Part shown: positions 21,213-28,273 of the stretch, piece after piece
How positions within the stretch are numbered: position 1 is the first letter of the stretch
Layout of the letters: every line of letters starts with the position of its first letter
Origin: Macrostomum hystrix
Lineage: Eukaryota; Animalia; Platyhelminthes
NCBI GenBank assembly: GCA_950097015.1
Contig: CATNEN010000001.1
Span: forward strand, 15,190,001-15,254,000
DNA: 64,000 bases
Direction of reading: 5' to 3'
Made by a program: the position numbers and the translations under genes
The notes under the pieces: generated by a model
What the model was told of the DNA's origin: nothing
Database searches by the model: none
Seen by the model: only the letters and a program-made list of their open reading frames with translations

Positions 21213-21986
21213 TTGTAGCGTAAAAAGGCTGAAAATGCAGCTGCTAAAAAGTGTATACTGGACGAAATCAAAATATTTCTGCTCCCCGAAGGGGGGCAAA
21301 ACTTGCTGAACTGAACACTAATAAATTCAAATTAGATGGGATCACAATGGAATTGGGATCAGGGATTACCTAGGCAAAATGATTAGCTAAATTGGGTTCA
21401 TTGCATAACAGAACTGAGATCGTTGCTTAGCTAAATTGTGTTTGTGGCATAACAGAACTGAGCATAACAGATCCCAATCCTAAATTCACAGAATCTCTTA
21501 GATCCCAATGCTAAATTCAGAGAATCTCTTAGATCCCAATGCTAAATTCAGAGAATGCAATTCTTGCAGTCAAATGCAATGAACTGTGCAATGATACTGT
21601 CTTGTTGGCGGAGCAATCTGCGAATTCATCATCTCTACTGTCCTTGTAAGTAAGTATTCACAAAGCAATTATTAAACTCATCAGTTGTCATTGAATTCCC
21701 TTATTTATAATATGTTATTTTGCATACTTTCATGTGGATGTTTGTTTAGTTAAAAACTTTCAATTAAGCTCCAAAACTTCATTTTAGGTTCTAAATTGAT
21801 CATAGCAATGAGCTGTGTCAGTTAAGTTTCTTATTTTCATTTAGGAGTAAGAAAAAGCAACACGAAACACTTATTTATCCAGTAAACAGAATTATTTATT
21901 TTATTTATTTAGAATTCTTTAAATTCTCAAACATAAATAAAAAAATCAAGAAATCATATCAAGTTAATTCCACAAACAAATTGAAT

Positions 21987-22351
21987 TTAATTATTCCGCT
22001 GCTGCTGCTGCTGCGGCTGTTGCTGCTGCTGTTGCTGCTGCTGCTGCTGCTGTTGCTGCTGCTGCTGCTGTTGCTGCTGCTGCTGCTGTTGCTGCTGCTG
22101 CTGCTGTTGCTGCTGCTGCAGCCGCATGTCGGCCAGGTCCGGGCACCGGGCCACAGGGTGACCTCCACCGCAGAGATAACAGGCCACTGTTAAGTTTGGA
22201 AAGTGCAATTTTACTCAACAGGTGGTTTCGAAAGACTTAATTACAGTAATGAGACTTAGAAATGAGACTTACTAGGTTTTCTAGGGTGTCCACCACCGCG
22301 GCCTCCTCGCCGCCTGCCGCCGCCGGAAAAGAAGTTCTGGGTAAACTTCAT
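21987..22351 (-). CDS. Two-exon small protein: RGG-rich + CCHC-like Zn knuckle + polyQ
   Basis: Exon 1 22351-22273 (MKFTQNFFSGGGRRRGGRGGGHPRKP), gtaagt...acag intron, exon 2 from 22186 in frame (MACYLCGGGHPVARCPDLADMRL-Qn-RNN*); TATATAAA ~22425-22432; AATAAA ~21900. Confidence 0.75.
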
Positions 22352-23167
22352 TTGTGGAACAGTGGAGTTATACAGTGGAACTATACAGTGGAAATTATAC
22401 GAGCGTGTCGTACGCTCACTCTGGTTTATATACGCTCACTCATGTCAAGCAAGGATTAGCGAGATTGGTTTGAAAACCTTGCTAACGAAATGAAACTCAT
22501 TTCATTTTTTAAAGCCCGTTTCAGCTTAGGCAAAAATGAATACCAGCTTAGGGCCACCCCCAACCCCAGTTAAAATCGTGTGAGGCTTCATTGGTGAGCG
22601 TCATGAGGCTTTAGCTGTTTGTGATTACTGAAAAGTCGCACTAGGTTGGGGCTTGCACTGGCAGTTTAATGAAATCACTTTAGTTGAGTACAAAGTTTAC
22701 TGCTATTGGCTGACTTGAAACCCTCTATTTTTAGCCACGTTAGCCACACGCCGCACTGGCTTCCCAATTACAGTGTACATTTAAGATCTTTTTTGTGTCC
22801 TATTATTGAAGTGTGTCGAAAACAGATTGCATAACAAGTCGCACCACACTCGACTCTGACACCCCACACAGTGTACATAAAGAAAGAACGTAAAAGCTAA
22901 GGCAATCACCAGCCAATCCACAACAAGTAGCCCAGTGGGTGGATTAGAACAAAACTCTCTCTGATTGGTTAGCCAGATCTAAATTGATCTTTACATGGCA
23001 CCCTCTATTGGCATGAGTCATCACAGTTAGGGTTGTCCGAAACGAAATGCTGCAATATAAACTGGCACAATTGGCCTTGATGCTAAAACTATCAAACCAC
23101 AAACCGTAAAGACCTTATCAGTGAAATTTTTATAATCCATATTTTTGGCAACTATCAATCGAGCAAT

Positions 23168-24924: not shown

Positions 24925-25880
24925 TCACAGAATCTCTTAGATCCCAATCCTAAATTCATAGAATCTCTTAGATCCCAATCCTAAATTCATAGAATCTCTT
25001 AGATCCCAATCCTAAATTCATGGGATCTCTTAGATCCCAATCCTAAATTCACAGAATCTCTTAGATCCCAATCCTAAATTCATAGAATCTCTTAGATCCC
25101 AATCCTAAATTCACAGAATCTCTTAGATCCCAATCCTAAATTCATAGAATCTCTTAGATCCCAATCCTAAATTCATGGGATCTCTTAGATTCCAATCCTA
25201 AATTCATAGAATCTCTTAGATCCCAATCCTAAATTCACAGAATCTCTTAGATCCCAATCCTAAATTCATAGAATCTCTTAGATCCCAATCCTAAATTCAT
25301 GGGATCTCTTAGATCCCAATCCTAAATTCACAGAATCTCTTAGATCCCAATCCTAAATTCACAGAATCTCTTAGATCCCAATCCTAAATTCACAGAATCT
25401 CTTAGATCCCAATCCTAAATTCACAGAATCTCTTAGATCCCAATCCTAAATTCACAGAATCTCTTAGATCCCAATCCTAAATTCATAGAATCTCTGAGAT
25501 CCCAATCCTAAATTCATAGAATCTCTTAGATCCCAATCCTAAATTCTTAGAATCTCTTATATCCCAATTCTTAATTCACAGAATCTCTTAGATCCCAATC
25601 CTAAATTCATAGAATCTCTTAGATCCCAATCCTAATCTCATAGAATCTCTTAGATCCCAATGCTAAATTCAGAGAATCTCTTAGATCCCAATCCTAAATT
25701 CATAGAATCTCTTAGATCCCAATCCTAAATTCATAGAATCTCTTAGATCCCAATCCTAAATTCATAGAATCTCTTAGATCCCAATCCTAAATTCATAGAA
25801 TCTCTTAGATCCCAATCCTAAATTCATAGAATCTCTTAGATCCCAATCCTAAATTCACAGAATCTTATATATCAATCCTA
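24925..25880 (+). repeat. 31-bp satellite gatcccaatcctaaattcatagaatctctta, flanked by ~44-bp units (24790-24910, 25880-26560)
   Basis: Tandem arrays. Confidence 0.97.
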
Positions 25881-28239
25881 AATCATTGCTTAGCTAAATT
25901 GTGTTTGTGGCATAACAGAAGTGAGATCATTGCTTAGCTAAATTGTTTTTGTGGCATAACAGAACTGAGATCATTGCTTAGCCTAATTGGGTTCATTGCA
26001 TAACAGAACTAAGATCATTGCTTAGCCTAATTGGGTTCATTAGGCATAACTAAGTTGGGATCCTTGCATACTAAATTGGGATCATAGCAAACCAGAATTG
26101 GAATTATCGCATAATGAAATTGGGCTCATGGCATGATACGAATGGGATCATTGAAGAATGGAAAATTGGATTCATTGTTTACCAGAATTATGATTAGTAA
26201 GAGGGGCGTCCGTAAGGTAATGAAAATTTTCTGCTACGAGTTGGGATCAAGGCAAACCAGAATAGGATCAGATTGGGTTCCCAATAGCCAATTGGGTTCC
26301 CAACCCAATAGCTAAATTGGGTTCATAGCATAACAGAACTGAGATCATTGCTTAGCTAAATTGTGTTTGTGGCGTAACAGAACTGAGATCATTGCTTAGC
26401 TAAATTGGGTTCATTGCATAATAGAACTGAGATCATTGCTTAGCTAAATTGGGATCTTTTGGCGTAACTAAAATGGGATTATTGCATAACTAAATTGAGA
26501 TCCTTTCATAACTAGATTGAGATCATTGCATAACTAGATTGGGATCAAGGCAAACCAGAATAGGATCGGATACAATCGGATCCCAATTTAGTTGTGCCAT
26601 GAAAGTTAATAAGTAATAGTGAAATTAATGTAGGTAAATATTAGGTGAATATATAGCAGGTTGGCTGCATATCAATGGGCCTTGAGATTGTGGTTGAAAT
26701 AACGTGTTCGCTGCTTTTTCACGATTCAGAGGTTCTTCCACTCTAAAACTGAGGGTATGCAGCCATGAGAGAGAGGTTTGAAGCAGCTTCAGCAAACCTA
26801 GAGACTTGTGATAGCTAAGCTTTTTGTGTGACGTTGAGTGCGTGAACTTAACTTGCCCCAGTGAATGCCTCTGACCAGCAGTGCAGAGTAAAGCAAGCCA
26901 ACAAGCAGTAGGATTGACACCATTATTCTTGCAGTCAAATGCAATGAACTGTGCAATGATACTGTCTTGTTGGCGGAGCCTTCTGCAAGTGCATCATGTT
27001 TACTGTTTGTGGGTAATATTTTTAGGTGCAATGCAATTTTTTCTTTTTTCATTGAACTGAATTCTCTACATTTGGAGTTTGTTTTCTTATAATGTCATAA
27101 TGATATGTATTTGTATAATAATAATTTTGCCAGATGCTCACTCAATTGTTGTTGTTTTGTTGTTTTCAATGTGTTTTGCAATTGAAGAAATACAAAAAAT
27201 GTTTCAGTGGACAAAGACCAGTCCCATGATTCATGAATCTGCACACCTGGTACCTGCCTTATTCTATTTTAAAAGATAAATAGTCAGGCATGCATTTATA
27301 ATGAAGAATGATACAAAATGGATTACTAAGAAAAGAGGTCAGATGAGAAATAGGATCTGATCAGAACTGGAATCATTAAGAAAAAGAAAGGAGATTAGAA
27401 ATTGATCCATTGATATTTAATTAGCCATTGATATGAGCTAACCATTTTGAACTATCAAAATGGATCTAATTTGAAATAGACTTTTATGTCATATAGGATT
27501 TGATTCAAAATAAGATTTGACAATGTGAATGAGGCATATAAGAAAAGAGAAGTCTGCTGAGGAGTGTGACTAGAAAAGAAAGGGGGAATTTAGCATGATA
27601 ATATATATCATATATCATGCCTATATATAGCCAATGTTAGCGTTATTAAAAGTGTCAAACCAAAGGTCGAAGGATGTAGCTCCAGTTGCTTTTGCAAAGT
27701 CCATTCACAATGAGATAGCTGCATTGAACTGACTCTTTAAGTCATTTATTATAATAAGAGGGGCCTCATTCAAGGGCAATAGTTGCAATGCTGAGCTACT
27801 TATTGTTCGGAACATTGCAGTCGCAGTTAGTACGATGAGCAGGGCTAAGAAATTCACTTACAAATGAAGAAAGTAAAAAATTTCTCGGGATGTGTATAAA
27901 ACTGTAGTACACATGAGCAATACAAGCAACAAGAAAATCGGAATAAAGCAAGTCATTTCTCGGAAATACGCAATTTCTTGGAATATTATTTAATTTATTT
28001 TCAGTAACAACTAAAAACGTGATCTCAACAGTTTTATAAACTAAATTAATAAAATAATTTTTATCAAACACTTTGACATATACAGGGCTCCAAACTAAAA
28101 AACTGTAAAAAGTTGATAGTTTTGTTTTACCTAAAATGCGTTATTAACGATCTCCAAAAATTCCTATTTTAAGCTTAAGCTTAAGAAAGACACTTAAAGT
28201 ACTCCTGCTAAATGGTATATATTAGACGAATATTAATTA

Positions 28240-28273
28240 TTTCTGCTCCCCGAAGGGGGGCAAAACTTGCTAG
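28240..28273 (+). mobile_element. Intact family-1 Helitron 3' terminus closing the RPA/Zn-knuckle segment
   Basis: ttctgctccccgaaggggggcaaaacttgCTAG|T. Confidence 0.85.

Follow-up and report, generated by a model that had tools for sequence, protein, structure and literature searches.

A short RPA70-like gene family of Macrostomum and its Helitron-rich surroundings in Macrostomum hystrix

Introduction

Is a gene that lies between two Helitron termini the cargo of a mobile element, or are the termini merely its neighbors? The question is raised by a 64,000-bp stretch of the genome of the flatworm Macrostomum hystrix (assembly GCA_950097015.1, contig CATNEN010000001.1, positions 15,190,001 to 15,254,000; hereafter the window, with positions counted from its first base), in which a gene for a protein with two OB (oligonucleotide/oligosaccharide-binding) folds and a small open reading frame (ORF) on the opposite strand are flanked by Helitron-type 3' ends. 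Macrostomum is a model for regeneration and stem-cell research, and its genome is repeat-laden and recently polyploid. The original prediction, made from the DNA sequence alone, regarded the two genes as the load of a helper Helitron. The reading favored here, to which we assign a probability of roughly 0.6, is that the OB gene is an ordinary chromosomal, vertically inherited member of a Macrostomum gene family (clade A; see below) in DNA rich in Helitrons and satellites. As judged from sequence comparisons, the gene would have been passed on vertically and would not be mobile, and the Helitron ends are then probably its neighbors rather than the borders of a gene-carrying unit.

Structure of the OB gene and predicted fold of its product

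The OB gene occupies positions 23168-24576 on the plus strand and comprises three exons, which together encode a protein of 338 amino acids (aa; summed exon by exon):

23168-23592, plus strand: exon 1, OB fold resembling DNA-binding domain A (DBD-A) of RPA70
23773-24247, plus strand: exon 2, OB fold resembling RPA70 DBD-B, followed by a family-specific, conserved C-terminal helix/beta extension
24460-24576, plus strand: exon 3, disordered tail with the motifs FSRD, STP, and GPSH and the acidic end DFMDE

The introns have GTAAGT donors and AG acceptors, and the gene is framed by a TATAAA box at 23056 and an AATAAA signal at 24590. Both exon junctions are spanned without indels by a protein of Macrostomum lignano (P0003; PAA48194.1, 370 aa) from the transcriptome-based annotation of that species (PMC5730564); the alignments read ...KEISDCEIK/M/NVNVYG... 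at the first junction and ...GDKE/VTFSRD... at the second. Of the two intact, spliced genes that had been proposed to lie head-to-head, the OB gene is thus borne out by the junctions matched in P0003, whereas its small partner is an ORF model without a homolog. The exons of the window gene were searched separately, and P0003, a natural protein, served as the full-length proxy. Neither the OB gene nor the small ORF has a paralog elsewhere in the window, where each is present as a single copy.

The relationship to RPA70 is evident at several levels. Exon 1 matches Pfam family PF01336 (E = 7e-9) and exon 2 matches REPA_OB_2 (PF16900; E = 5.7e-10); among structures in the PDB, the former is assigned to RPA70 DBD-A and the latter to RPA70 DBD-B. 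A profile of the family aligns collinearly over ~215 residues with DBD-A and DBD-B of human RPA70 (1fgu/1jmc, residues 201-417) with an E-value of 1e-25. Residues F238, F269, W361, and F386 of human RPA70, the aromatics that stack on single-stranded DNA (ssDNA) in 1JMC, correspond to F, Y, W, and Y both in the family profile and in the exons of the window gene.

An AlphaFold model of P0003, which stands in for the window protein and was built from an alignment of 68 rows (mean pLDDT 83), contains two OB barrels; residues 282-315 form a helix and a three-stranded sheet, the tail is disordered, and there is no third OB fold. Its best match among solved structures is RPA70-AB bound to ssDNA (1jmc_A; E = 1e-17, TM score 0.79), followed by RADX, HIN domains, Teb1-AB, and POT1 (E = 1e-10 to 1e-8). 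Viral folds (a protein of EhV-86, baculovirus LEF-3, and phage ssDNA-binding proteins [SSBs]) match far more weakly (best E = 7e-9, TM score 0.29).

The remaining parts of RPA70 have no counterpart. Pfam searches with the exons yielded no match to Rep-A_N, the N-terminal OB-F domain, and DBD-A begins ~20 residues past the initial methionine. Likewise, neither exon 2 nor exon 3 matches Rep_fac-A_C (PF08646), which would represent DBD-C with its zinc ribbon and trimerization helix, and the protein stops ~100 residues past DBD-B. Because DBD-C of RPA70 bears the trimerization element, the window protein should not join RPA32 and RPA14. Sequence and structural model together support a predicted ssDNA-binding protein of the stand-alone type that resembles RPA70, has two OB folds, and carries a tail with an acidic end, in agreement with what had been proposed for this gene. 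Such a protein would be expected to bind ~8 nt of ssDNA alone, in the fashion of RPA70-AB, and its acidic tip may serve to dock partners or to inhibit the protein itself, in the way known from bacterial SSB, T4 gp32, and T7 gp2.5. A likely setting would be replication or repair in proliferating cells.

A family of shortened RPA70 paralogs in Macrostomum

When exon 2 was searched against 1.84 billion cluster representatives, only seven were recovered at E <= 1e-18, namely four proteins of M. lignano and three Logan ORFs. Below these seven, there is a gap to E ~1e-10, where archaeal RPA and eukaryotic RPA1 begin. All close relatives of the window gene are M. lignano proteins or Logan ORFs; identity to the best M. 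lignano protein (PAA48194.1) is 59-67%, and the searched protein collection has no entry for the exons of the window gene themselves. No relatives were detected in JGI metagenome contigs or in IMG/VR viral contigs. The proteins of M. lignano fall into four clades:

Clade A: P0003; four NCBI loci on four contigs (PAA48194.1, PAA84280.1, PAA80343.1, and PAA49042.1)
Clade B: P0104 (P0104-P0108; PAA76446.1 among them); eight intact NCBI loci on at least eight contigs, all 334 aa and >90% identical
Clade C: P0007
Clade D: P0008/P0081

In a maximum-likelihood tree of the exon-2 region, the family is monophyletic against the RPA1 outgroups (support 94). The window gene clusters with P0003 and Logan ORF P0002 in clade A (support 88), and Logan ORF P0004 clusters with P0104 in clade B (support 98); another Logan ORF (P0005) matches P0104 along the exon-2 part. 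The Logan ORFs on genomic contigs (P0001 and P0004 on a single contig of 2683 bp, and P0002) end at the same exon borders as the window gene, which indicates that intron positions are conserved in the family. Each of clades A and B unites a protein of M. lignano with divergent sequences, namely the window gene and P0002 in the former and P0004 in the latter, which probably stem from species other than M. lignano, and the split between the clades therefore likely predates these species.

Conservation of the tail motifs extends across clades A and B, as does that of the acidic end, which reads DFMDE in the window gene; the clade A proteins of M. lignano end in AEDED and those of clade B in NEDD. 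Judging by these comparisons, the members of the family are shortened RPA70 paralogs in which DBD-A is followed by DBD-B, by a short conserved helix/beta extension, and finally by a disordered tail that bears an STP motif and terminates in acidic residues. Theirs is an AB-only family of RPA70 paralogs, at the sequence level so far seen only in Macrostomum. In current annotations, its members are listed simply as "OB domain-containing" or "hypothetical", and a search of literature and supplements for gene identifiers of M. lignano returned only canonical RPA1 and RPA3, with no mention of the family.

Canonical RPA1 of M. lignano possesses all four Pfam domains and is represented by four gene identifiers in the same redundant assembly. 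Because this number equals that of the clade A loci, clade A is at baseline; clade B, with its eight loci, has about twice that baseline. If the window gene is indeed an ordinary chromosomal member of this family, Macrostomum would bear four clades of stand-alone RPA70-AB proteins beside its normal RPA. An RPA70-AB protein could compete with RPA on ssDNA or complement it in neoblasts or the germline, and the family may bear on genome maintenance in the Macrostomum lineage.

The small divergent ORF

The OB gene shares an island of unique sequence (21659-24737, 3.1 kb) with the small ORF on the minus strand. The two ATGs (at 23168 and 22351) are arranged head-to-head at a distance of 817 bp, exactly as originally described:

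22351-22273, minus strand: small ORF, exon 1, 79 nt (MKFTQNFFSGGGRRRGGRGGGHPRKP plus 1 nt), followed by a GTAAGT donor
22186-21987, minus strand: small ORF, exon 2 (ACYLCGGGHPVARCPDLADMRL, followed by 34 Q, one P, 5 Q, and RNN before the stop codon)
22352-23167, 816 bp: divergent intergenic region with TATA-like boxes facing both ATGs and eight CCAAT/ATTGG boxes

The odds that this ORF is a real protein-coding gene are about even. The gene model is well formed: an ATG, a GTAAGT donor, an AG acceptor, and an in-frame join across an 86-nt intron yield a product of 92 aa (summed exon by exon), and TATAAA (22430-22425) and AATAAA (~21895-21909) signals are plausibly placed on the minus strand, so that each of the two genes has the TATA box and polyadenylation signal that had been claimed for it. 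Moreover, several features of the nucleocapsid (NC) knuckle are retained in its Cys/His pattern: an aromatic residue, a Gly, and the GH..A.C arrangement.

Nearly the same weight can be given to the alternative that the ORF arose by chance where a stretch of high GC content and a minisatellite of the (CAG)n type lie next to the promoter of the OB gene. The polyglutamine tract is an imperfect (CAG)5CAA repeat with a period of 18 bp, and on each strand more than one reading frame is open across it. The product has no Pfam domain, and the knuckle alone does not match zf-CCHC (PF00098) even at E-values up to 10. The spacing of the knuckle (CX2CX3HX4C) is one residue short of the canonical CX2CX4HX4C, and its only matches in the PDB are retroviral NC knuckles with E-values of 0.1-0.5, each with a one-residue gap. 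No homologs were found in a search that requires three shared 5-mers and covers proteins of 40-128 aa; it thus reaches only close kin in that size range, and Macrostomum is thinly covered. The proposed role of the product as a nucleocapsid-like chaperone with a zinc knuckle is not upheld by these results.

The eight CCAAT/ATTGG boxes of the intergenic region exceed the window average of 2.1 per 816 bp and place the region among the top 3.6% of positions. This excess would suit a shared cellular promoter and is only a hint in that direction. Most of the other stretches of the window that are rich in CCAAT/ATTGG are CCCAATCC satellites.

Direct repeats and Helitron-type units around the gene island

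The gene island is bracketed by two copies of a direct repeat, a feature that was absent from the original prediction, and a spacer separates the longer copy from the right-hand Helitron end:

21318-21658: R1, short copy of the direct repeat, with 44-bp units, 31-bp units (x2.8), and a unique tail of 100 bp
24738-27020: R2, long copy of the direct repeat, with 44-bp units, a 31-bp array (x31), further 22/44-bp units, a unique stretch, and the 100-bp tail of R1
27021-28204: spacer, AT-rich, unrepeated in the window, without a convincing ORF

The edges of R1 and R2 are 95% and 88-91% identical, and R2 represents the sequence of R1 expanded by arrays. The possibility that the two belong to a wider repeat family was rejected, as the window contains no further copy. 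The tail shared by R1 and R2 (21560-21641 and 26925-27006) resembles a small exon, with a ttcttgcag acceptor, an ATG ORF (MNCAMILSCWRS...), and a GTAAGT or GTAATA donor; this exon is putative.

The Helitron-type termini belong to a family of units, here called Hel-N, that is defined by a 29-nt 3' motif (CTGCTCCCCGAAGGGGGGCAAAACTTGCT) with four matches in the window and none in shuffled sequences; a fifth, mutated copy is located at 39818 (minus strand). The motif folds into a hairpin with a stem of 8 bp and a GAA loop, and 11 nt separate the hairpin from CTAG. The motif is followed by CTAG at 28273 (28243-28273), 31665, and 40766 (minus strand) and is damaged at 21307 (21279-21307, where the final AG is missing) and 39818 (minus strand), which agrees with the originally described damaged left and intact right 3' ends of the gene-bearing interval. 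The 5' ends (TCCAC(T/G)ATACTAAAAATGAAATG..., in short form TC...ACTATACTAAAAATG) are located at 18046, 28274, 40765 (minus strand), and 43065 (minus strand); the TC start TCCAC(T/G)ATACTAAAAATG is present at the two minus-strand positions, and those at 18046 and 28274 are variant starts. Helitrons insert between A and T without target-site duplication; among the Hel-N units, a single clean 5' junction has an A in front of it (43066), and the 3' ends are flanked by T, A, or the 5' end of the next unit. Clean junctions are few. Units measure ~1 to 3.4 kb, have interiors that consist of different tandem arrays (23-, 18-, and 21-bp units), and often stand head-to-tail. Their terminal features fit the canonical Helitron termini as summarized in PMC4344730, and the ends that flank the gene island are supported as good Helitron-type termini. 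Those closest to the genes are parts of the following features:

18046-21307, plus strand: Hel-N copy 1, complete non-autonomous unit with 5' TC...ACTATACTAAAAATGAAATG, a 23-bp array (x50), and an 18-bp array (x58)
28205-28273, plus strand: Helitron 3' stub with 68 bp of family homology (hairpin and CTAG), abutting the 5' end of the next unit
28274-31665, plus strand: Hel-N copy 2 with 5' end, 21-bp array, and 3' hairpin plus CTAG

Copy 1 (3.3 kb) ends in a 3' hairpin terminus with CTTGCTG in place of CTTGCTAG, which fits the loss of one base from CTAG. The 3'-to-5' junction at 28273/28274 repeats that at 40832-40606 (minus strand) with 90% identity. Upstream of the 5' end of copy 1, three truncated 5'-end repeats (AATATACTAAAA(A)T(G/T)...) are stacked at 17915-18046 and look like a 5'-end stutter. 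At 39818-43065 (minus strand), two Hel-N units stand head-to-tail, with the CTAG at 40766 directly followed by the 5' sequence TCCACTATAC, an arrangement as at 28273/28274. As previously noted, a Rep/helicase is missing: no ORF of at least 130 aa in the window resembles one.

Two further candidates were discarded. A hairpin at 24681-24718 (...CCTGCT...CTAA, then T) was considered as a second Helitron terminus behind the OB gene, but its similarity to Hel-N ends is not significant; in local alignments with three Hel-N 3' ends, the 60 nt left of R2 score at or below the mean of shuffled sequences. The hairpin end had also given the first impression of a Drosophila DINE-1 context, which was dropped, as the protein matches all point to Macrostomum.

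Cargo of a Helitron or chromosomal neighbor

The strongest competitor of a chromosomal origin, although itself unlikely, is a composite Helitron formed by terminator bypass, in which a unit that starts at 18046 and has lost its CTAG runs on to 28273 and carries the segment 21308-28204 with both genes as cargo; by extension, the cargo could provide an SSB for rolling-circle transposition. The anatomy permits this scenario. The 3' end that comes next in this orientation (28273) is intact and followed by T, there is no 5' end between 21307 and 28273, and read-through past 21307 is conceivable because this terminus is damaged by only one base. Helitrons can acquire host DNA, and RPA70-like genes are carried by plant Helitrons (PMC4344730).

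The OB gene is nevertheless not located inside a single 5'-to-3' element, since the only 5' end upstream of the genes (18046) belongs to a complete unit that closes at 21307, before the genes are reached. Moreover, a pair of flanking Helitron ends is unremarkable, because there are five such 3' ends in 64 kb, and the end at 28273 is a 68-bp stub in a junction like that at 40832-40606 and may simply be part of the following tandem insertion. Only one copy of the presumed composite is visible; the window contains no second copy of the gene pair, no copy of the direct repeat beyond R1 and R2, and no RepHel. The family is old, has retained its introns, has cellular RPA as outgroups and no relatives in viral or metagenome contigs, and is at the RPA1 baseline in clade A. 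The testable evidence (the single copy in the window, the age and introns of the family, the cellular outgroups, the baseline number of clade A, the right end as part of a tandem insertion, and the local density of ends) either runs against a bypass from 18046 to 28273 or is neutral. The same evidence, namely the old, intron-conserving family, the baseline number of clade A, the cellular outgroups, and the dense local ends, also speaks against the helper Helitron of the original prediction.

Several points weigh against an ordinary chromosomal gene. The left terminus at 21307 is damaged while its hairpin is intact, which is precisely the configuration that the bypass model needs. The eight loci of clade B, with their >90% identity, hint at a recent amplification by an unspecified mechanism, and it is these eight intact loci alone that keep an amplification mechanism in play. 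The binding of ssDNA is predicted from sequence and model, and look-ups in literature and supplements returned no expression data for any member of the family.

The bolder version of the cargo hypothesis, which we consider distinctly unlikely, holds that the short RPA70-AB genes of Macrostomum are accessory genes of satellite-bearing Helitrons, that the window shows one such cargo (an SSB and a degenerate knuckle/RGG/polyglutamine chaperone) caught behind a terminator that no longer works and ahead of the one that follows, and that clade B was spread by Helitrons. If the genes were Helitron cargo, they would represent an unusual, intact, and promoter-bearing pair of helper genes on a non-autonomous rolling-circle element, and such a helper Helitron would be of a kind that is not known to have been described.

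Improbable as well is the domestication of a mobile-element gene, in which an RPA-like gene of a Helitron or virus has become a fixed host family; this scenario overlaps with the chromosomal reading. It would account for the large divergence of the family from flatworm RPA1 (best outgroup matches E ~1e-10) in a lineage where M. lignano keeps its canonical RPA1, for the truncated architecture of a stand-alone SSB, and for the location in a region rich in mobile elements. However, the closest matches include no RepHel-linked or viral protein, the viral folds (E = 7e-9, TM score 0.29) fall far behind RPA70 (E = 1e-17, TM score 0.79), and the same data are explained by a host RPA1 that was duplicated and then diverged rapidly. 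Finally, a telomere-end or otherwise specialized ssDNA binder with an OB pair like POT1 OB1-OB2 or Teb1-AB, rather than a general SSB, is highly improbable, since the matches that point to it (POT1 in Pfam with exon 2, E = 3.7e-5 and below the curated cut-off; POT1 and Teb1-AB among the fold matches, E ~1e-9) are far exceeded by RPA70-AB in both sequence (E = 1e-25) and fold (E = 1e-17), and all four stacking aromatics are kept.

Other elements in the window

The remainder of the window is populated by other mobile elements and repeats. A decayed Polinton/Maverick-like element extends over positions 43600-53200 and includes the following features:

44197-45208: rve integrase
45525-48435: protein-primed type-B DNA polymerase, in pieces on several ORFs (PF03175 match on 46620-47168)
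51042-52340: double-jelly-roll capsid ORF (PF21738), followed by an ORF of 281 aa

A Ty3/Gypsy-type long terminal repeat (LTR) retrotransposon at 32993-37437 contains a gag/protease ORF and an uninterrupted pol ORF of 1170 aa (reverse transcriptase, RNase H, and integrase). Directly past the terminus of Hel-N copy 2, an ORF of 348 aa (31768-32814, minus strand) resembles by eye the C-terminal region of a reverse transcriptase of the non-LTR type and has no Pfam match. Long imperfect tandem repeats that are open in several frames (LPPPPVY / GEEGDGGRQ type) occupy 56200-58450, and two plus-strand ORFs are located at 5-691 and 1034-1786 (228 and 250 aa); these also lack Pfam matches. Rfam and tRNA scans of the window returned nothing. 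The load of satellites and retrotransposons fits that reported for the genome of M. lignano, in which LTR elements account for 21% and simple or tandem repeats for 15% (PMC5730564).

Comparison with known systems

The closest structural counterpart of the family is the DBD-A/B region of human RPA70 (1JMC/1FGU), with which it shares the tandem OB folds and the four aromatics; the fold predicted for P0003 can be superposed on the structure with bound ssDNA (TM score 0.79). In contrast to human RPA70, the family lacks OB-F, DBD-C, the zinc ribbon, and the trimerization helix (338 vs ~600 aa) and has its own C-terminal extension and acidic-ended tail; M. lignano moreover possesses a separate canonical RPA1. 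Teb1, MEIOB, and RADX are likewise RPA70 paralogs, specific to a lineage or a process, whose duplicated OB arrays work outside the canonical trimer. They still have at least three OB folds or else additional domains, whereas the Macrostomum family has kept only A and B, and RADX and Teb1-AB are much weaker fold matches (E = 1e-10 to 1e-9).

The combination of an OB-fold binder with a disordered tail and an acidic end (FMDE, AEDED, and NEDD in the family) recalls bacterial SSB, T4 gp32, T7 gp2.5, and hSSB1/2. These tails share no sequence homology, the Macrostomum protein has two OB folds per chain, and the function of its tip is suggested by analogy.

The Helitron-encoded RPA70-like proteins of plants and some animals resemble the situation in the window in that an RPA70-derived OB protein is located near Helitron termini. 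They differ in that here there is no RepHel nearby and the gene belongs to a low-copy family with conserved introns and cellular RPA outgroups, in a comparison that comprised cellular rather than reference Helitron RPA sequences. The Hel-N units themselves are similar in organization to satellite-bearing, non-autonomous Helitrons such as DINE-1 and DINE-TR1 of Drosophila, with which they share short conserved termini, a 3' hairpin, copy-specific internal arrays, and head-to-tail junctions, although Hel-N is unrelated in sequence and represents a flatworm family that starts with TC at its 5' end and terminates in CTAG at its 3' end.

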